A stretch of DNA of 64,000 nt from contig CDRNST010000013.1 in assembly GCA_977016875.1 (NCBI GenBank), positions 1,240,001-1,304,000 on the forward strand, given 5' to 3'. The position numbers were made by a program, and so were the translations under genes. Each line of letters opens with the position of its first letter. The stretch's first letter is position 1. Positions 42,416 to 60,385 of this stretch are shown piece by piece. The notes beneath the pieces were generated by a model. The model was not told the origin of the DNA. It searched no databases and saw only the letters and a list, made by a program, of their open reading frames with translations. The DNA comes from Pavona decussata (Eukaryota).

Positions 42416-43825
42416 ATAATAATAATAATAATAATATAATAATAATCAATTTATATAGCGCTTTTTATATAACATTCAAAAGCGCTTACAATATAAAAAC
42501 GAAAAATTTACTCAAAATCAATAAAATATAAAATTTAAGAATAATCAATCAAACAAAAAGTAAGAAATAAAATAAACAAAGTAAAGAATAATCAGATGTC
42601 ATATGCTTTTTTAAACAAAAATGTCTTCAAGTGTTTCTTGAAAGTGTTTAAGTTCTTGGCAGTCCTAATTGCCAGAGGAAGCTTATTCCACTTGGATGGA
42701 CCAGCAAAAGCGAATGCTCGATCACCAAAAGTCTTACATTTGGTTTGAGGCACCTCTAACAAAGTGAGGTCATTAGATCTCAAAGAGCTTCTGATTGATG
42801 CCTTTTCCCTGATGAGATCACAGATATAATGTGGAGCGATACCATTTAACGCTTTGAAAACAAGTAGTAATATTTTAAATTTGATCCAAAACTCTACGGG
42901 TAACCAGTGAAGATCTTTTAGATAGGGTGAAATGTGACTAAATTTGGGTACTAGACAGACGACTCTAGCTGCAGCATTGAGGACTTTTTGGAGCCGATCC
43001 AGTTGATATTTCGGAAGTCCAGAAAGGAGAGAGTTGCAATAATCCAAGTGAGATGTCACAAAAGCATGAATTAATATTTTGGTGGCCTCAGTGGAAAGAA
43101 ATTTTCTTATTTGTCTAATGTTGTAAAGACCCTTAAAGGCTTTGTTACGAATGTGTCCAATGTGAATGTCCATCGCCATGTGCTCATCAAACCAAGATCC
43201 CAGATTTCTAGTACTCTTTACAGGTTCAATGATGGAGTCCCCAACCATTATAGAATTGATGTTTATTTTGGACAGCTGACCAGGAGAGCCGATAATCAGA
43301 AATTCAGTTTTAGAGTCATTTATCATAAGACGATAAGAGACCATCCAGGCACGAATATCAGCGACACACTTTTCAATCGTACTAACTGCATTATCCTGAG
43401 CCAGCTGTGATTCCGGTTTAAAAGAAAAATAAATCTGGGTATCGTCTGTAAAGGCATGTGCAGATGGAAAGTGTTTTCTTATGACTTCAAACAATTTAGA
43501 TCCATAGAGAAGAAAAAGGACTGGGCCCAGACAGCTTCCCTGAGGTATTCCACGAGACAAGTTGAATTCATCAGAGAGATTGTTCTCTATAACAATGCAT
43601 TGCTTCCTTTCCGATAAGTAAGACTGAAACCATAGAGGAGCAGTGTCCGTTACACCAAAATCGCGTTCTAATGTATTCAACAGTAAAGAGTGGTCAACTG
43701 TATCAAATGCTGCACTAAGGTCCAAGAGAACCAAGAGAGTAACTTCTTGCTTATCCATATTAAGCAAGATGTCATTCTGGACTTTAAGAAGGGCAGTCTC
43801 AGTGGACGAAAAACAACGATAGGCT
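42416..43825 (-). mobile_element. L2-clade LINE, 5'-truncated, with (TTA)n tail
   Basis: ORF 42592-43767: LDLSAAFDTVDH, GIPQGSCLGP, FTDDTQ, INDSKTE, LDYCNSLL, LHWLPV, GDRAFA. (AAT)n at 42416-42445. Confidence 0.92.
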
Positions 43826-44264: not shown

Positions 44265-45382
44265 GTAAAAATCTGCATACTGCATGGAGCTGCGTTTCTA
44301 AATTTGGTCGCCAAAAATTTTTGGCCCTTCAGGCCAAATATTTTTACTTCAAAATTTCCGCAGCAAGAACAATATTTCATCAAAAAAGATGTTTATTTGA
44401 AAAAATAGCTGTCTATATTTAGGCCTTAATAGTTATGCTTAACTTAATTTTCTGTGCTTTGTTGTGGGTTACAATCAACTGAACATTGAAATATTATTCC
44501 TATTTTCTTTACAACGTAGCTCTCTTATTAGAGTACAATAAACATTAAACTTTGTGAATGTCAATCACGATAGCTGGGGAGGCTCTACAAAACTGTCTTC
44601 ACAATGACTGCATTGTTAGCAAATAGCATAGTTTAACATTAACAAAATTCGGGTTTCAATATTATTTTAGGTAGATTCCAAAATTTCGGCATGTGAAACA
44701 ACTGAACTAACCACATAAATACGACAGAGGGCAAAGGCACTCTATGACTTGCTAAAACTAAATCTTGCTTTCAACTTTTTAAAACGCAAAGCTACTTTGT
44801 GCAAGAATGGCACCTCCTGATAATATTCACACTGCTAACAAAATTTCCTGATTTTTTGTTTAAACTATCTTTGATTTCAAAGATATTTCATAAGGCAGGT
44901 TAGCTTTGTTATCAGTTACAGTGTTCTCATTAGTGTTGTTAATGATCCTTGAAGAACGGTCTTCCTGGCCTCTGTCCAGTTGAAAACCACAGCTCAACTG
45001 CCTGTGATGGGACAAACTCAGCGATGGGAGAACCCTCTGAAGATGTGCCAATGAGGTCTTCTGTGGTTTCTGTTTCCAGGCAGGAACGCTTTGCACTTTT
45101 GATGCGGTTTTGGGAAGAAAATGCCCTTTCACACTGTGCACTTGAGATTGGCAGCACAAGAAGAAGCTCTACCAGATGCAAAACGTTTTTATAGTCGGAC
45201 TTATACGGTTCTTTTGTCAACATTGTTGACCACAACCTGCTGTAGGCCATATCTTGAAACTGTGTTTTAACCATCACCTTGAGTGATACCCATTCCTTAG
45301 GCACAGGTTCAACCCTACATCCCCCACTCTCTAGGACAGGCCTAAACCATGTGACTAAGCGTGCCACTTCATCTGACCCAAA
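44265..45382 (-). mobile_element. Partial second copy of the 3' end of the hAT element at 52612-57793
   Basis: Near-identical to about 52660-53741; encodes the hAT dimerization domain LPISSAQCERAFSSQNRIK. Confidence 0.92.
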
Positions 45383-50399: not shown

Positions 50400-51950
50400 C
50401 AAGATAAAATGTTCATGTAAAAGCTAAGACAGATCAGAAAGGAAAGCGGCGAATAAGTTGCCTCGAAGTTTGCACTTAAAAATAAGAACAGAGTTGCAGA
50501 GTTTAAAGGAATTGTCCAAACTGTTCCACGGACTTACTATACGGTGATAGAATGTCCAGATTTAGATTTAAATAGGGGGATTTGCAAAAGTTGGAGCTTC
50601 TAGTTGCGCGACTGCTTACTTCACCAAATGTTTGAAACTTCCACGAGAGGTAAGTGGGAGTGGAGCCAGTCATACACTTGAAAGCAAGCACAGCGTCAGG
50701 GATATATAGCTGTGATTTAACAGGGAGCCAGTGCAGTTCGTTTATCAGCTGAGTAATGTTGTCGAATTTTCTGGTACTGCAGATAATCCAAGCTGCAAAG
50801 TTCTAGACTGCTTGGAGCTTAAGGAGATTAGTGTTCACTGCATTGGACCAGACGGAAGAGCAAAAAAAAACAATTTACTAAACACTAGAGTGTTAATTAT
50901 TGTGGTTAAAGTCGATCTATCAAACACGGCTTGACATGATTGATTTGAGCTAAACCTGAGAAGCAGGAAGAAACTGTTTTAACAATATGCTCGTGAAAAG
51001 TAAGACTCGAGTCAAAAGTCACGCCAAGGTCTTTAACAACGTGCACCGGTGTTAGTTCTTTACCCAAAAGGGACAGGGATATCCAGGAGATTTTGTAACC
51101 TTTGCCGACTTCCATAAACTATAAGCTTAGTTTTTTCTGGGTTAGGAGAAGACGGTTTTCGAAGCACCAGTTTCGAATTCTTAGAAGGTCATCGTTCATA
51201 GCAGAAACAGCCTTAACCCAGTCATGGGCTGGGAAGGAAATGTAAAGTTTGGTGTCATCCACGTTACTTTCAGTAAAACAGGACCGAGGGGTATGTGGTA
51301 AATCGTTTTTTGTAAATACTGAATGAAATGGGCCCGAGAATGCTTCCTTGTGGCATGCCAGATACAACGGGTAGAGGATCAGACAACTCAGAATTTATGT
51401 GTAGAACTTGTCGTCTGTTGGATAGATAGCTGGTGAACCAAGCTATGCTTGATGACGAGATTCCTATATCCAGCAGTTTAGTTAGCAAAATTTCATGATT
51501 TATTGTGTCAAAAGCCTTGATCATATCAAGTAGAACAATTGCGGTAATTTTGTTGTTGTCAATCGGACTTAAGATAGCGTCAGTTGTTCATATTAAGGAA
51601 GTTTCCGTAGAGTGCAATTTCTTATTACCACTTTGTCGTGAAGATAACCTTTCATTTGACACTAGGTAAGGCATAATTTGATTAAGCGCAACCCTTTCAC
51701 ATACTTTCGAAAGAATAGGCAAGAGAGAGATAGGCCTATTGTTGTTGGGTTCCTCGTGATTACCTCGTGATTCAGAATAGGTGACACCTCAGCTAATTTC
51801 CAAGAATGAGGAAAAATTCCACGAGAGAAAGAGGCGTTAATTAAAGATGTGATCACCGGGAGGGTCGCAGGCACGCTATCTTTGATTACAGGCACCGGAA
51901 TTTTGTCAATCCAGGGGAACTTATTTGCTGGCATTGAAGTGACAATCTTA
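50400..51950 (-). mobile_element. Decayed L2/CR1-like LINE RT region
   Basis: KAFDTINH, PQGSILGP, VDDTKLY, VKDLGV, AFKCMTG..P.YL in frameshifted ORFs. Confidence 0.85.
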
Positions 51951-53297
51951 GCAGCTTAAATGTTTGTATGTTTTGAATCTGTTAACATATAAATTGACCA
52001 ACATGTAACTGTGTTTCTGATCCTCACAATTTAAGAAGCACTTTTACAGTTGAAAAAAGGTGTAAGTCCATTGTGTGAAATAACAAATTCACGATATATT
52101 AAGAAACACAACTTTTCCAGTCCCCTGGCATATGGAGGTTCCATTGTTTTACACATAGATGTTCAACTCTGGGGTTGTCGCCCTGCCCAAGAGAGAGAGG
52201 TTTTTTGTTTGAAACATTTTGCCCAACTACTCTTGAGACTTTAGCTGGAGTTCTTTTTTGCCTTTTTGTCATGCGGGCCTGGTATGTGGCATCAAGAACT
52301 GCTTTGATGTTTTTTAGCCTTGTCCTCACCCACTGCAAGGGCTTAACATGTCTCGGAGGGGGACCAGTTGTTTCCTCTCTATCCCCTTCGTCACTCTCCT
52401 CAGACAACATAAATTCAATCGCATTCACTAATGCCAGTATGGCCTTCATTCCTTCCTTATCGTTCGAGGTAAGGTTGTCTTTTTCTACCATCTCTTGTCG
52501 ATAGTTAAGTTTCTGAAAACAGAGCCAATAATGGATGAGTACATGTATGGTTGAATAAGGCACATAAAATACACATACAGCAAATGTGTATATATGTGTG
52601 TGTGTGAGTGACAGGGCTCGACTTTAGGAAAAAAAACCTTGGGGCCAGCTGGCTCCTAAGTTTTTAGATTTGGTCGCCAAAATTTTTACTTCAAAATTTC
52701 CGCAGCAAGAACAATATTTCATCAAAGAAGATGATAACAATTACACGATGTTTATTTGGAAAAATAGCTGTGTATATTTAGGCGTTAATAGTTATGCTTA
52801 ACTTAAGTTTCTGTGCTTTGTTGTGGGTTACAATCAACTGAACATTGAAATATTATTCCTATTTTCTTTACAACGTAGCTCTCTTATTAGAGTACAATAA
52901 ACATTAAACTTTGTGAATGTCAATCACGATAGCTGGGGAGGTTCTACAAAACTGTCTTCACAATGACTGCATTGTTAGCAAATAGCATAGTTTAACATTA
53001 ACAAAAATCGGGTTTCAATATTATTTTAGGTAGATTCCAAAATTTCGGCATGTGAAACAACTGAACTAACCACATAAATACGACAGAGGGCAAAGGCACT
53101 CTATGACTTGCTAAAACTAAATCTTGCTTTCAACTTTTTAAAACGCAAAGCTACTTTGTGCAAGAATGGCACCTCCTGATAATATTCACACTGCTAACAA
53201 AATTTCCTGATTTTTTGTTTAAACTATCTTTGATTTCAAAGATATTTCATAAGGCAGGTTAGCTTTGTTATCAGTTACAGTGTTCTCATTAGTGTTG

Positions 53298-55500
53298 TTA
53301 ATGATCCTTGAAGAATGGTCTTCCTGGCCTCTGTCCAGTTGAAAACCACAGCTCAACTGCCTGTGATGGGACAAACTCAGCGATGGGAGGACCCTCTGAA
53401 GATGTGCCAATGAGGTCTTCTGTGGTTTCTGTTTCCAGGCAGGAACGCTTTGCACTTTTGATGCGGTTTTGGGAAGAAAATGCCCTTTCACACTGTGCAC
53501 TTGAGATTGGCAGCACAAGAAGAAGCTCTACCAGATGCAAAACGTTTTTATAGTCGGACTTATACGGTTCTTTTGTCAACATTGTTGACCACAACCTGCT
53601 GTAGGCCATATCTTGAAACTGTGTTTTAACCATCACCTTGAGTGATACCCATTCCTTAGGCACAGGTTCAACCCTACATCCCCCACTCTCTAGGACAGGC
53701 CTAAACCATGTGACTAAGCGTGCCACTTCATCTGACCCAAAGTCGACCAAGCTGTCAACATCATGGGGCCATGCATCTACTGTACATTGAAAATAAGCAT
53801 ATCACGAGGAATGGTGCCTGCTGTTGGGTTTCGCTGATGAGGCTTCAATCAAATTGCTGAATTGCTCCTGAAGTCCTTGTTTGCACAATTCCACTGCTCT
53901 TTCCATCTCAGACTGCAAATCACTGGACTGCTTGCCACGTTTTTGTGTACTAGATCTTGTGACAATGACTCCTTGAAAAAGAGCTTTGTCATCACTTGTT
54001 TCCACCACTTTGTCAAGTGACTCAAGCCAACCACCAGGAGCCGCGTTTAGGCAATACAGATACCTTAGCACATGTTTCCCTTAGAAGAGAAACTGCTGAA
54101 GGCAAAATGAGATCATTCTGTTGAAACTTTAAGCTAAACGTTTCCAATATGGAAAACAAATCCGCCAGGAAATGACAGAAGGCCAGAAAATGGACATCCT
54201 TAATGGCGGCTGCTACGTACTTGGTCCACCCTTTAATTTCAGCTTTTTGGGATGTGGATGCCAGGTGTTCCATGTGTTGAAGTACAGCAGCATACTGGCC
54301 AGGGTCATTGTCAGGATCTCCTTTTGGTGGTTTGATGAGGGACCTTAATGCACGGTTGACATGGGTCAACCATCTGGCCCCCTTAACTTGACCAGCCTTT
54401 AACACACCAATGCCCATAGCTTTCAGCTCTCTCGTACTCTTGGGGCTAAAGTGGCATGTTTTCCATATAAGGTGAAGGACTTCATATACCTTTTCGACGA
54501 AGGCACAGGATCTTTGAAGCTCAACCAAGGCCAGTTCCAAACGATGTGGTAGGCAGTGGATCTCAATCAGCCAGGGGGTGTCTTTTTTTAATCTTGCAGC
54601 CACACCAGCGTTCTTGCCTAAGTTTACGGCAGCTCCATCCGCACCAAGGCCAATTGACTTGGTTTTTCAATTTCTAATTTCTAGTGAATTAAAGTCATTG
54701 TGTGCTGTTGCAATAAAAAAAAAGAGAATTTAATGGTCTTGCAAAAGACAATTATTTTGATACACAAGATTGTTTGTTCTAACTTTACAGTCAAGTTATT
54801 CCAACTTTTGTTGACAATTGACACTGACCTCCAGCATGTGCATGCTCGACTACTTTGTGGCCCAGAAGACGATTCACTGGCTGACCATTCTCTACGAATC
54901 TACAATGGATTGTCTCATTTTTGACTCCTCCTGCATCCTCGCCACTGTCAATCATAATGGACATGTACCGATTTGAAGGCCATTCTTTCTTTGGAGATCT
55001 AGAAGTTTGGGGAACTTTGTAAAAGGAAGGTCTTCCTTTGCTATAAAATAGGTGGTATTCATTTTCATGGCAACATCTTTTCTTTGTTCCTCATCACACT
55101 TATTACTCATTTTAATGAAGCTCTTGAAAATGGGTCTGTCCTTCTCTGCCTTTTGTTTCGCCAAATAAGAATCACAAGCTCGCATGTGTGTGAAGCTTTC
55201 ACTATGTTTTTTTAAAGTTTCCCATTTAAAAGTTTTGCAACCTTTCACAAACTCTGATTTTCCTGTTGCACAGATGATTACACCTTTCTCATCATCGTAG
55301 ATAATCCAGGGAAAGTCATCTTTCCAGTGAGGAAGAAACTTTCGGCTCGTTTTCTTAGTTGAGGTTGCTGTTTCACTTTCATTCTTTCTTTTCAATCCTG
55401 AGCTGGTGGTTTTGTTGGCCAAGCTAGACGTGTCTTCATTGGCAGATTTAAAGAAAGATGAAATGTCCCTTTTGCCAGGATTTTTTTGTAGGGGGTTGGA
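53298..55500 (-). pseudogene. ZNF862-like hAT transposase
   Basis: RKFLPHWKDDFPWI...FVKGC..FK.ETL.KH..S..H (TTF zinc finger), NTTYFIAKEDLPFTKF, GLGADGAAVN.G...GVAARL...IHCLPHRLELA, ARW, SSAQCERAFS. Confidence 0.92.
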
Positions 55501-55539
55501 CGCTTTCTTCTTTCTTCTTTGCTGGCACATCTGCATCTG

Positions 55540-56233
55540 TTAAAATCACAACAGGTACAAAATGGTTCGGCTGGAACACGGTATTGTGGCGAGTGTCCAG
55601 GTTGCCATCTCTTGTCCACAATATCTGTATTTGGTCGAAGGTGGACTCTTCTGCCATTCATGGAAGGATTTTCCAGTGAAAAATTGGCCTTAACCCAGGG
55701 TTTGCTTCCGGATAGATAGAAAATATGGGACATCTTAAAACTGTGGCAAGGGCCAGCATCTGGATCATACCGTTCCAGTTAACTTCTATGCAGGTGTTGC
55801 GTGCTTCCACTCGAATAGCTTCCAGCCGATTTTTGGAGCTCGTCATTTCTTTTTCGCCCGCTTCTGTCAGGATTGTCGAGAATACAGTGGCCTCTGAAAA
55901 AGGTATGCTTTTTTCAACTTCCAGGAACCTGTCTTTTATGGTTTACACGTAGTAATCTGGGAAAAAGAACAGCTCTCCTGCAACAAGTAGTCATATGACA
56001 TCACTCAGTGACTCATTTTCCTCCAACCATATCGATGCTACATTAAACATACAATTGCCATCCCCTGTTGTTTTTAACGCAACGAAATTCTGTCCTGAAA
56101 ACGTGTCCCTTGGAATGAGAGCAGTTCCAATTTCATCCTGTTTCTTTCCAGACAAATGGTGATTTCTACCCCGGCCAAAACAAGAAGACAACTTGACCTC
56201 ATATTCTGAAACAACCTCTTTGGCGACCACCAT
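55540..56233 (-). pseudogene. Vertnin-like OTU cysteine-protease domain
   Basis: TTGDGNCMFN.AS..L..NE....I*L..A.EL.....YY; W.GMIQMLALATVLRCPIFSIYP; ILW...PNHFVPVV. Putative catalytic Cys and His are present. Confidence 0.8.
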
Positions 56234-57793
56234 TGACGCAAAAAGAGAGAGGATTAGCTAAACTACGACTCACAGCAGGCGTTTGCTTATATTAAAAGAA
56301 GGTGGAGTTGACAGTTTCAACTCTGCCTTTTTATCGCTCTTATCACAATCACTTTTTCTTGATTTCTTCAGCTTGAAAGAAACGTTAAGATAAAAAAGTA
56401 TACGTATAAAGAAAACCCTTAATGATGCATGCTTTGTTTCATTATTTTATTTTTGGTCAGTATCACTGACCAGCTATAAATTGCAGGAACTAAATGTTAC
56501 AGTGCGCAAGTTTTCGTGTTCATTGACGTGTGGCGACTACACACCAGAATTTCATGTGTGTGTGTGTGTAAAGCTATCATTTCAGTTTTCATACGGTGGG
56601 AATTGGTAGAGTTCAAAGCGACATGCAAGCTTGTACTTAATCATTTTATCAAGCCTTGAGTCTCTTCAGTGGATTTTCTGTACAAACCCAACTTATCAAA
56701 ACGTTATATTCGAACGTAAGTCAAAGGGAACAAAAGAAAAAACAATTTCAACGCTTAAATATGCCTTCCTTATTCAAATTGGTTTGATCATCGTTAAATG
56801 CTTCGATTTTTTTTTATCGTCTCAGAAGTTTCTTTTAAGAAGAAATGGTCTTTGAAGCAATTCAACACATCTTGAAGAGTCGCGCCGGCCTGAAAATTCC
56901 ATAGCGTGTCGATGTGCTAAATACGGTAATTGAATACACCGACAATAGCAAGCGATGCGCAAATAAATACAAATGCTGAAAGTCAAAAGCAGGCTATTTT
57001 TGCTACATGTAAAACTTGAGATACATTGCACGAATGGAAGAAAAAGTTAAATGTACATCAAATGACTAAAATACTCACCGCTTTTGGAAAACTCAAAAAT
57101 AGTTTAAGCGTGTTTTAGCGAGACAGAGAGAAATCCGATATCTGCAAAAAATGCTAATGCGTGTGTCTGAGGTTTGCGTTTTGGCGGGCTGTTTACGATC
57201 TACCATCAATGTATTTTACTTCTTTCACATGCTCTCCAGGAACTACAAAATATTGCCAATGAATAAAGCTATAAAACAAGGAAAGTTATTTTATTCACAA
57301 GACAGCATGCGACAAATAGAACATCGCTACATGCATCCAATGTCTGTTCGATAACATCAAATGCGAGCTTCCTTAAATTAAATATTTGAACTCCCTATTC
57401 TTTCCCTACAACATACTGCTACTAAATTGTAATGTGAAAACAAATGTTATTTCTCTTGAAACGAATAGACCATAGTTTACAAAATTGCAAAAGTCTCATT
57501 TTAGGAACAAATGTTACTTCCGGAATGCTTCTAACGAAAGATGTAGATAACTGATTTCACAACAGTAACTATAGTAAAGGCGGTTGAAACAGATTTGTAC
57601 ATGAAAGTGATAAGAAATTACATTGTCTGTGCATTCCTCGCAGTTTACAATTAACACTCATTTAATTCGTCATGGATCTCAGAAAATGAAAAAAATAATA
57701 ACGTGAAAGTGCAGTGGCCAGACTGGCGACCAGACATGAAAAGTTAGTCGCCAGCTGATCAAATCCAGTCGCATTGGCGACCCCAAAGCCCTG

Positions 57794-58834
57794 CATTGAA
57801 TTTGATTTCAAGGGCTCGTTGGAGATCCGCTTGCTGGGCTGTTCCCTGCCTGGCCAAAACTTCCGGAAGTGCTTCTTGCTGTGTGACAGCTTTAGAACTA
57901 CCACTAGGGGTTAAATAATTGTGGCTCTTACTCTTCAAGTGCTTAGTAAGTGTTTTGCATTTAAAGTTGTCGCATCCCTTGACTAAGGATGAAGATGCAT
58001 GCATCGGAAGGGCTTTACAGTAACTGCAGCACACCAGTTCTTTTTGTGAATCCCATTCTAACCAGTCGAATTCGTTCAACCAGGCTCCTTGAAACTGGTA
58101 AACTTTTCGTTTCTTACTCACCGGCTTGTCCTCCTTATCTTGGACAAAGGTCGCATCATTGGAGTTGGGGTTTGAGGAAACATTATTCACTGTGTTGGAT
58201 GACGGCGGCCGGCTGTTTGAGAATTAATTTTCTTTATGTAAATTAGCGTTCTTTATGTTAATGTTGACGGCGCATTGATTTAACTGAGATAAAATTCATT
58301 GTTTTACAGGAAATACGTAACACTTGTTCTTACCTTGAAGAAAAAAAGTCTCAACCCCGATTGTTTAGACATTCTTGACACTTTGGCTTGACCTAAGGCT
58401 TGACCTTTGATATCAGAAAAACAAAAAATTGCACGAGAAGCACGTGTTACAGAAGGTTGCCTTCACTCGTACATGTCAGCGATGCGGTCACAAAACCGAG
58501 AAGAGTCTGGGGTGGGATGAAACACGGACAAGAAACGGACTTGGGGAAACAACAAATAAAACACACACTGATGCAAGAAAAATGGTGTAACTTTATTATG
58601 TGGAACCTAATTGCGTTACGGCCACATTTGAATTTATTATTTCAAGCTTCTGTTTCGTGTTTAATCAGGCAAAGTAAACAAGAATTGTCAGGTAACGAAT
58701 TAAAGTGGCCCCAATTCAGGCGCACTGAACTTGGGTGTTTTAGGCTTGTGAGTGCGATCAAATATGATTTTTCAGGTGCAAAATAAAAAATCTAGTCGCA
58801 TATGCGACCAGCTGGTTGCTAACTTTCATCCCTG
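57794..58834 (-). mobile_element. 5' end of a second ZNF862-type hAT element, truncated by the first
   Basis: Terminus CAGGGATGAAAG with TGGTCGCA/TGCGAC motifs. ORF FQGAWLNEFDWLEW...CCSYCK...KGCDNFK...KH..SKSH...KFN stops at the other element's TIR. Confidence 0.8.
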
Positions 58835-59954: not shown

Positions 59955-60385
59955 CTCCTGTTACTTTGCACGCATCAGATAGATGGTAGGTAGGTAGTAT
60001 TAAAGCTTGATATATTAGTTGCAAGGTCGCCTGAGAGACAAGGTGCCTTATTCGTTTTATGGCCCCAATACCAGAGGCAACTTCCTTTGTTACTTTCTCG
60101 ATATGGCCACTTCAATCAAGGCTGTCATCAATGGTCACTCCAAGTGATTTTGCAGTAATGACCTGGCTAACTTGAAAATCACTAATTGCAAATGTCGGGG
60201 ACTCTGTGAGAGTACTTAGCCTCTGCCTAGATCCGATAAGCATAAACTCGGTTTTAGTCATATTTAGAGTAAGTTTATTTGCTCTCAGCCAATTGTGAAC
60301 ATTTTCTAAATCTTGATTTAGATGCAACTGAATATTGTCTGCATTATCACCTGCGTATGTAAGGTGGGTGTCATCAGCGTACATC
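59955..60385 (-). mobile_element. L2/CR1-like LINE RT fragment
   Basis: MYADDTHL...LTLNMTKTEFMLIGS...KSLGVTIDD. Confidence 0.85.

Follow-up and report, generated by a model that had tools for sequence, protein, structure and literature searches.

A probable hAT5-clade transposon relic in Pavona decussata and its coral relatives with an OTU-type domain fused to the transposase

One locus in the genome of the coral Pavona decussata raises the question of whether an OTU-type cysteine-protease domain and a hAT transposase, found next to each other in broken frames, derive from a single transposon protein. The locus lies in a stretch of 64,000 nucleotides (contig CDRNST010000013.1, positions 1,240,001–1,304,000, of assembly GCA_977016875.1), which was analyzed as a whole and is called the window below; coordinates without a contig name refer to it. 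On the minus strand at 52612–57793, bounded by CAGGGCT, the window carries an OTU domain, followed in order by a lysine/serine-rich (K/S-rich) linker, a zinc finger, a hAT DDE core, and a hAT dimerization domain. A sequence-only reading of the locus had placed the CAGGGCT termini, the OTU domain, the linker, the hAT core, and the dimerization domain on this strand, and all of them were recovered at these positions. With a probability of about 0.9, we interpret the element as an old copy, now inactive, of an autonomous hAT transposon of scleractinian corals that belongs to the hAT5 clade. In its intact relatives, a predicted two-exon gene encodes the OTU domain, a basic Ser/Thr-rich linker, the finger as the DNA-binding part, the RNase-H-like DDE core, and the dimerization domain (hATC) in one protein.

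Fusion of the OTU domain and the transposase

The OTU domain and the transposase are genuinely fused, in one open frame, in several lineages. The metagenome scaffold L064, which comes from another sample and encodes the protein P0052, has 84–85% DNA identity to window positions 56224–53845, and P0052 has 87% amino acid identity to the window over the 91-residue OTU piece tested (55661–55933). The first exon of P0052 encodes 550 unbroken amino acids (aa), which comprise the OTU domain, the linker, the finger, and the transposase N-terminus as far as the first catalytic Asp. The frameshift that separates the two frames in the window had been assigned by the sequence-only reading to a run of seven A residues; it could be located there (Table 1), and the P0052 sequence across this run is uninterrupted (...QPAKKKPCKRDISSFFK...).

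In the Pavona decussata genome, matches to the OTU domain and to the hAT core share a strand and keep this order, at a distance of 1.2–2 kb, at no fewer than 10 other loci. At the merged loci C56, C273, and C49, single open reading frames (ORFs) of 476–562 aa comprise the OTU domain, the finger, and the transposase N-terminus, and a second exon carries the remainder. One family has its OTU, hAT-core, and hATC matches all within a single frame, which has 1169 aa at C25, C34, C49, C60, and C132 and 1176 aa at C382; the 1169-aa frame is known from the match coordinates plus its first 716 residues, which are visible in L010. The sampled parts of these six loci are near-identical, and nine loci of the family, including three with shortened frames, are near-identical across about 0.8–1.1 kb of upstream non-coding leader. 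This near-identity of non-coding sequence indicates that the 1169-aa family is very young, and it is probably still active. Members of this family (L010, L011, L012, L015, L016, and others) have a long Lys/Glu/Met-rich repeat linker. In another paralog, L025/L036 (C49:5072302-5077903), the N-terminus of the OTU domain is split by a retroelement that has a 432-aa reverse transcriptase-like ORF on the opposite strand.

Single full-length products were also found in other samples, namely P0096 (1086 aa), P0043 (967 aa), and P0117 (1139 aa; OTU, DUF4371, and hATC); the hATC domain (PF05699) is present in P0043, P0096, P0117, and P0129. A tblastn search with full-length P0043 matched the whole window element in order (E-values of 3e-39, 5e-33, and 1e-119). 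The two Logan contigs coding for P0096 and P0043 start exactly at CAGGGCT, as would be expected where a repeat boundary breaks an assembly. The sequence-only reading had proposed a hAT lineage with an OTU domain in the same protein and had suggested searching for one ORF that joins the two. Such single frames exist at multiple loci and in other samples, and P0052/L064, the deeper lineages, P0096, P0043, P0117, and the 1169-aa frame bear out the proposal.

Among 22 proteins, the pairwise identities of the OTU part and of the finger/transposase part are strongly correlated (Spearman 0.83; Mantel r = 0.87, reached by 0 of 2000 permutations), and the mean identities of the two parts (41% and 39%, respectively) are equal within error. 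This co-divergence suggests one old and stable fusion under similar constraint, rather than repeated capture. An OTU part nested in the element as a private insertion was rejected, since the OTU part co-diverges with the transposase. OTU and transposase as separate genes, or the OTU part as a private insertion, would have spoken against the proposed fusion; the relatives instead have one frame, and the two parts co-diverge. We likewise reject, as having a negligible chance of being correct, the view that the arrangement is a coincidence, with an OTU gene or another element nested beside a hAT remnant of different origin. The different OTU and transposase frames of the window and the many other repeats in the region would agree with such chance neighbors, but the single frame of P0052, the recurrence of the same order across the genome, the 1169-aa frame, and the co-divergence do not.

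All named relatives come from scleractinian corals (Acropora, Porites, Montipora, Desmophyllum, and Oculina), with the best matches in Porites and Acropora; a paralog at C33 has 94% identity to a Porites lobata protein. In NCBI, one relative carries the name "zinc finger protein 862-like" and others that of "uncharacterized protein"; in UniRef, several of the transposon OTU proteins are named "Vertnin." As regards annotation, coral proteins of the OTU-hAT family labeled "uncharacterized," "Vertnin," or "ZNF862-like" are transposase genes.

The OTU domain and its relation to vertnin

Based on profile comparisons and a structural model, the OTU part is of the OTU cysteine-protease type, A20/Cezanne-like and with a vertnin-type fold. 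Three relatives exceed the cut-off of 23.3 bits for the Pfam OTU family (PF02338), i.e., L010 (24.9 bits), P0073 (26.1 bits), and P0084 (26.6 bits). In the PDB, a profile of 29 domains had no matches other than OTU enzymes (OTUD1, 4e-7; A20, 9e-7; VCPIP1; OTUD7B; and OTUD5), and the DGNC motif around the Cys and the HFVPL motif around the His of A20 are aligned with it. The AlphaFold2 model of the P0052 OTU domain has a predicted local distance difference test (pLDDT) score of 91.1 and a predicted template modeling (pTM) score of 0.87. All 50 of the 50 Foldseek matches listed for this model are structures of OTU deubiquitinases or viral OTU proteases (46 at E <= 1e-3; best 4.6e-6), including Cezanne, VCPIP1, OTUD3, A20, TRABID, and DUBA, and a protein language-model look-up also points to OTU. 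A20, OTUD7B (Cezanne), VCPIP1, and OTUD1 are the best matches by profile and fold, and with A20 both catalytic motifs (DGNC for Cys, HFVPL for His) are identical. However, these four are host signaling enzymes outside transposases, and the likeness amounts to 16–22% identity and template modeling (TM) scores of 0.45–0.54.

A closer match in shape was found with vertnin. In a shape search of the ESM Atlas with the P0052 OTU model, a chordate "vertnin" cluster ranked second (TM 0.78 over 203 residues; root-mean-square deviation of 3.1), just below a cnidarian OTU cluster, whereas ordinary OTU clusters had TM scores of 0.53–0.55. Cnidarian proteins aside, no cluster is structurally closer than the vertnin cluster, and the description of the domain as vertnin-like by the sequence-only reading agrees with this ranking (0.78 vs. 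about 0.54). The UniRef label "Vertnin" is attached to the Porites relative P0073, a fungal protein, and a rotifer protein. Word-index protein searches did not return vertebrate vertnin itself, such that the link to vertnin comes from the structural match and from automatic names. In the literature on vertnin and transposons, only short interspersed element insertions in pig were found.

The catalytic residues provide a further comparison. The Cys is invariant in both OTU alignments made (29 and 28 sequences, with 24–45% identity to the first sequences). Of the His motif, the N, H, and F do not vary among the 29 sequences; among the 28 sequences, the N does not vary either, and the H and F are almost invariant. 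The window copy itself retains both the Cys motif (GDGNC) and the His motif (NHFVP). This conservation, together with the equal conservation of the OTU part and the transposase, makes it quite unlikely that the domain is a catalytically dead scaffold, such as a ubiquitin- or protein-binding module. That explanation draws on vertebrate vertnin, which a 2023 survey classed as an inactive OTU-like homolog without catalytic residues (PMC10318531) and which, as noted above, is the nearest structural cluster beyond the cnidarians. The domain context differs as well. The vertnin cluster carries Vertnin_mid and the helix-turn-helix (HTH) domains HTH_Tnp_1/HTH_23, whereas the OTU-hAT proteins have a zinc finger, a DDE core, and hATC; no Pfam matches to Vertnin_mid (PF28388) or to HTH domains were found in the window pieces or the relatives. 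Given the retained Cys and His and the lack of Vertnin_mid and HTH domains, we class the OTU module as vertnin-type but do not class the protein as a vertnin.

The same OTU type was found in further proteins, all from other samples. It is fused to Mutator-like element (MULE) proteins with FLYWCH (P0092 and P0136), to Helitron proteins (P0124 and P0127), and to a PHD-like finger; it is C-terminal in P0097 (1067 aa), and P0080 is also among the proteins with this OTU type. The pogo-type P0130 (DDE_1 and HTH_psq) was matched in a word search, and the Pfam OTU profile gave no score on it. These sequences suggest that the OTU module moves between transposon superfamilies. The HTH domains of the vertnin cluster, together with the presence of this OTU type on other transposons, make an HTH-bearing transposase a likelier ancestor of vertnin than a hAT. 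The bearing on the origin of VRTN that the sequence-only reading had proposed would thus concern the OTU type: as judged from the automatic cluster annotation, vertnin has this OTU type in common with the OTU-hAT proteins but probably not a hAT ancestor. The closeness of the two makes it testable that vertnin, a vertebrate developmental regulator, was derived from a transposon protein, and it points away from the hAT partner.

Termini, hAT group, and state of the window copy

The 5' ends of the copies at C101, C2, and C56 and of contig L063 read CAGGGCTCGAAAT... The 3' end of the window element, read on the other strand, begins with CAGGGCTCGA..., which is common to these paralogs and L063, and GGTCGCCAATGCGAC is common to the window 5' end and C101. 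The flanks of the copies that share these termini diverge exactly at CAGGGCT. Just inside the 5' end, GTCGCCA/TGGCGAC motifs are found in C101 and L063 and TTGCGAC-type motifs in C2 and C56; the GGTCGCCA subterminal motifs are probably binding sites of the transposase. The 13-mer CAGGGCTCGAAAT occurs 189 times in the genome, compared with four times for the reversed control. Among the first 100 sites listed, 22 convergent pairs are 0.3–5.4 kb apart, and 14 of these 22 have an identical 5-bp flank, for which the chance is about 1 in 1000 per pair; three have a 6-bp flank, one has a 4-bp flank, and four have no match. Many pairs are separated by about 0.8 or about 1.55 kb and have 5-bp duplications (e.g., C6:6472940-6474470 and C62:1389898-1390669), and the short pairs look like abundant non-autonomous derivatives. 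Several CAGGGCTCGAAAT termini have identical flanks, suggesting that they are nested in another amplified repeat. Genome pattern searches with the terminus and the expected 8-bp flank (three strings) gave no in-place match, only off-target chance ones.

The passages on hAT5 in two papers (PMC9004415, PMC12730594) define this group by 5-bp target-site duplications, state that it was first found in cnidarians (Nematostella), and credit its description to Putnam et al. (2007) and Kapitonov and Jurka (2007). hAT5 is a known exception among hAT elements, the target-site duplications of which otherwise measure 8 bp. The 5-bp duplications around CAGGGCTCGAAAT suggest that the OTU-hAT clade fits this known cnidarian group. 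The hAT blocks (Asp/Asp/Glu, CxxH, and RW) could be read from the alignments in the window, and the same blocks are present in the relatives. The CAGGGCT ends agree with the short inverted repeats, starting with CAG or TAG, that bound elements of the hAT superfamily. Window pieces were searched separately, with exons kept apart and broken frames left unread through stops; the dimerization domain at 53301–53750 matched PF05699 (E = 8.4e-10; 38.8 bits vs. a cut-off of 21.4). A phmmer search of the PDB with the transposase part of P0096 found nothing. A Transib or CMC identity, prompted by the 5-bp duplications, was excluded by the hATC domain and the hAT blocks.

These termini also bear on whether the proteins belong to a family of host genes that was domesticated, resembles ZNF862 or vertnin, and is not mobile. 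The NCBI names of the relatives and the low copy number of some lineages are in line with a host gene, and individual OTU-hAT lineages may be domesticated. As an account of the family, however, domestication is highly improbable: transposon termini bound the window copy, which is a pseudogene; in one family, nine loci, of which six have the full-length frame, are near-identical over the non-coding leader; two Logan contigs start at CAGGGCT; and the genome holds 189 terminal 13-mers, with 5-bp duplications around the short derivatives.

Several points weigh against the interpretation of the window element as a hAT5-clade transposon with an OTU module. For the OTU module, the window pieces reach only 15 bits with PF02338, below its cut-off, and, according to one paper (PMC9741609), no OTU domain of a transposon has been assayed. 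The joining of the two coding parts by two-exon splicing is a prediction read from the sequence, and the window element is single-copy at the DNA level in the Pavona decussata genome. For the ends, the flanks of the window copy (ATTCAATG vs. TCACTCAC) contain no 8-bp or 5-bp target-site duplication, and its ends therefore rest on the homology of the termini. The sole full-length OTU-hAT copy with both ends listed (C101:290084-295464) also lacks such a duplication, and no full-length copy was seen with both ends plus a duplication. The tie between the short elements with 5-bp duplications and the OTU-hAT elements is thus the shared 13-nt terminus only.

The features of the window copy are listed in Table 1. 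Its OTU frame (56233–55451), with ALATVL at 55736–55753 and PIFSIYP at 55709–55729, is broken by three in-frame stops (TGA at 55991–55993, TAA at 55943–55945, and TGA at 55658–55660), at which the intact P0052 has Arg, Gln, and Arg, respectively. The sequence-only reading had reported two stops, each a TGA in place of CGA. The Arg residues of P0052 are consistent with a CGA-to-TGA change at both TGA codons; the count was too low by the TAA that stands for Gln. The finger directly follows the linker, as proposed; called a TTF zinc finger at the time, it is typed as zf-C17orf113 by Pfam, with a match in the window (E = 4e-5) that is under the Pfam cut-off and matches in the relatives that exceed it. 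Relatives are split into two ORFs at the same point as the probable intron of the window, after ...HAHA(E/G)G. The lesions first listed are present, but four more had to be added, i.e., the gap in the finger, the deletion of about 100 bp, the frameshift near 54042, and the TGA at 53802–53804. Together with the three OTU stops and the A7 frameshift, these make the window copy a pseudogene, and it is an ordinary dead relic that is inactive today.

Table 1. Layout of the OTU-hAT element and its partial second copy, in window coordinates
Feature	Position	Strand	Details
5' terminus and subterminal region	57700–57793	−	CAGGGCT at 57793–57787; three GGTCGCCA/TGGCGAC motifs within the first 70 nt
Non-coding 5' leader, about 1.5 kb	56234–57699	−	No long ORF; 56331–56769 is 71% identical to the L064 leader
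OTU cysteine-protease domain remnant	55553–56233	−	Catalytic Cys in GDGNC (56051–56065); His in NHFVP (55553–55567)
A7 run with frameshift between the OTU and transposase frames	55481–55487	−	P0052 in one frame across the same point
K/S/T-rich linker with degenerate motif like the PCNA-interacting protein (PIP) box, KRDISSFF (55450–55473)	55315–55552	−	
Zinc finger, zf-C17orf113 type	55174–55314	−	9-residue gap removes Cys positions (seen in tblastn alignment)
Transposase N-terminal part, end of exon 1, first catalytic Asp (MIDSGED)	54833–55173	−	Deletion of about 100 bp at 54968 relative to L064
Probable intron (approximate bounds)	54700–54832	−	GTCAGT donor and polypyrimidine-CAG acceptor, read from sequence
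hAT catalytic core	54025–54666	−	Second Asp in GADGAAVN; CxxH block HCLPHRLELA; RW motif GARWLTH; frameshift near 54042
Insertion and C-terminal region	53301–54041	−	In-frame TGA at 53802–53804; catalytic Glu in SSAQCERAFS; stop codon at 53298–53300
3' untranslated region and 3' terminus	52612–53297	−	Ends ...GTCGAGCCCTG at 52612; GGTCGCCA motif at 52672
Partial second copy of the 3' part of the element	44333–45382	−	Corresponds to 52676–53741; 97.6% identical with two indels; lacks the terminal ~60 bp

The partial second copy, 1.05 kb in size and 8.3 kb away from the element, includes an open hATC-coding piece and may be a product of local rearrangement or aborted repair. An ORF on the minus strand (57762–58190) with another zf-C17orf113 finger (E = 1.3e-8) is cut at its tail by the 5' end of the element. 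That this ORF runs into the 5' terminus suggests that an older hAT-like gene may have been the insertion site of the element; no match to its continuation was seen in the window beyond the 3' end of the element. A (CA)n tract adjoins this 3' end. Reverse-transcriptase fragments of non-LTR (long terminal repeat) retrotransposons are found around the element at 42592–43767, 51662–51934, and 60112–60384 (minus strand).

Predicted function and comparison with known systems

The transposases of hAT elements such as Hermes and Ac are positioned as multimers by the finger and the subterminal motifs, and their DDE core excises the element via hairpin intermediates and reinserts it. The OTU-hAT transposase would excise and reinsert its element in the same way. 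We infer that the OTU module may act in cis as a deubiquitinase that removes ubiquitin or a ubiquitin-like modifier, which would shield the transposase from ubiquitin-dependent degradation. Alternative targets at the excision break could be chromatin or proteins of DNA repair, e.g., PCNA.

A second conserved feature lies about 25–35 residues (up to 61) past the OTU domain, within the otherwise variable linker. There, a strict PIP-box motif (Q-x-x-[LIM]-x-x-[FY]-[FYLMW]) is present in 16 of the 29 proteins and a degenerate form in eight more, including the KRDISSFF of the window; shuffled linkers contain the strict motif in 0.3% and the degenerate one in 6.5% of cases. This conserved motif suggests binding to PCNA. 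PCNA-binding motifs were reportedly described by Warbrick in 1998 in the pogo transposase and were reportedly also noted in an Ac-like element.

The linker is also where the OTU domain might act as a self-processing protease, cutting the fusion to free a mature transposase, with ubiquitin not being its target. For the OTU-MULE fusions of Medicago, self-processing has been put forward (PMC1702500). Polyproteins are processed by OTU-type proteases of viruses, and a long and poorly conserved linker might hold a cleavage site. Nevertheless, the nearest solved structures are cellular deubiquitinases, and the OTU domain is N-terminal in the hAT, MULE, and Helitron proteins but C-terminal in P0097, which suggests no single fixed cleavage geometry. 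Moreover, no conserved Gly-Gly-like site was seen in the linker, and the element conserved there is the PIP-box-like one. Self-processing is therefore unlikely, and a deubiquitinase-type role is preferred.

A wider hypothesis would combine this role with the vertnin link. The vertnin-type OTU domain would be an ancient and active accessory of animal DNA transposons, stably fused to hAT5 and carried also by MULE, Helitron, and possibly pogo elements. Together with the PIP box of the linker, it would take the transposase to PCNA and strip ubiquitin at the excision break, with the transposase itself, PCNA, or histones as substrates, and vertebrate vertnin would be its domesticated and catalytically dead descendant. 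We offer this hypothesis tentatively and consider it possible but more doubtful than not. Accessory isopeptidase domains recur across unrelated transposon superfamilies, and a compact cut-and-paste element with an OTU domain in the same polypeptide would be a tractable system in which to test the role of ubiquitin editing in transposition. The Pavona decussata genome offers intact, very young OTU-hAT copies and many short derivatives for such work.

In the full-text literature, no paper was found on an OTU domain in a hAT element (the hAT5 consensus libraries of Repbase and Dfam were outside this search), and hAT is absent from the lists of OTU carriers in the papers found. OTU-hAT appears to be an unreported fusion on the known theme of isopeptidase modules of transposons, although it may have been cataloged earlier in Repbase or Dfam. 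With domesticated hAT proteins of the ZNF862, ZMYM6, and C17orf113 types, it appears to share the zf-C17orf113 finger, hATC, and, in only some relatives (P0046, P0047, P0066, P0095, P0117, and P0129), DUF4371. Unlike ZNF862, which has a KRAB domain in the human gene, OTU-hAT has no KRAB but has an OTU domain, terminal repeats, and multiple near-identical copies, the last two of which demonstrate its mobility; the label "ZNF862-like" is a source name. The likeness to the hAT5 elements of Nematostella and Hydra comprises a cnidarian host, a DDE core with hATC, short CAG... termini, and 5-bp target-site duplications at the short elements that share these termini. The difference is the OTU domain: in the literature, as distinct from Repbase and Dfam, no statement was found that the described hAT5 elements encode one. 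Among transposons with published OTU or Ulp1 modules, i.e., Helitron/Helentron, Ginger1, and MULE elements (PMC2836005, PMC9741609, PMC1702500, PMC6431247), the Helentrons/Helitrons, Ginger1, and the MULEs of Medicago likewise have a papain-like isopeptidase domain fused to a transposition protein. In contrast to those carriers, the partner here is a hAT transposase, and the OTU domain is N-terminal and followed by a linker with a PIP-box-like motif.

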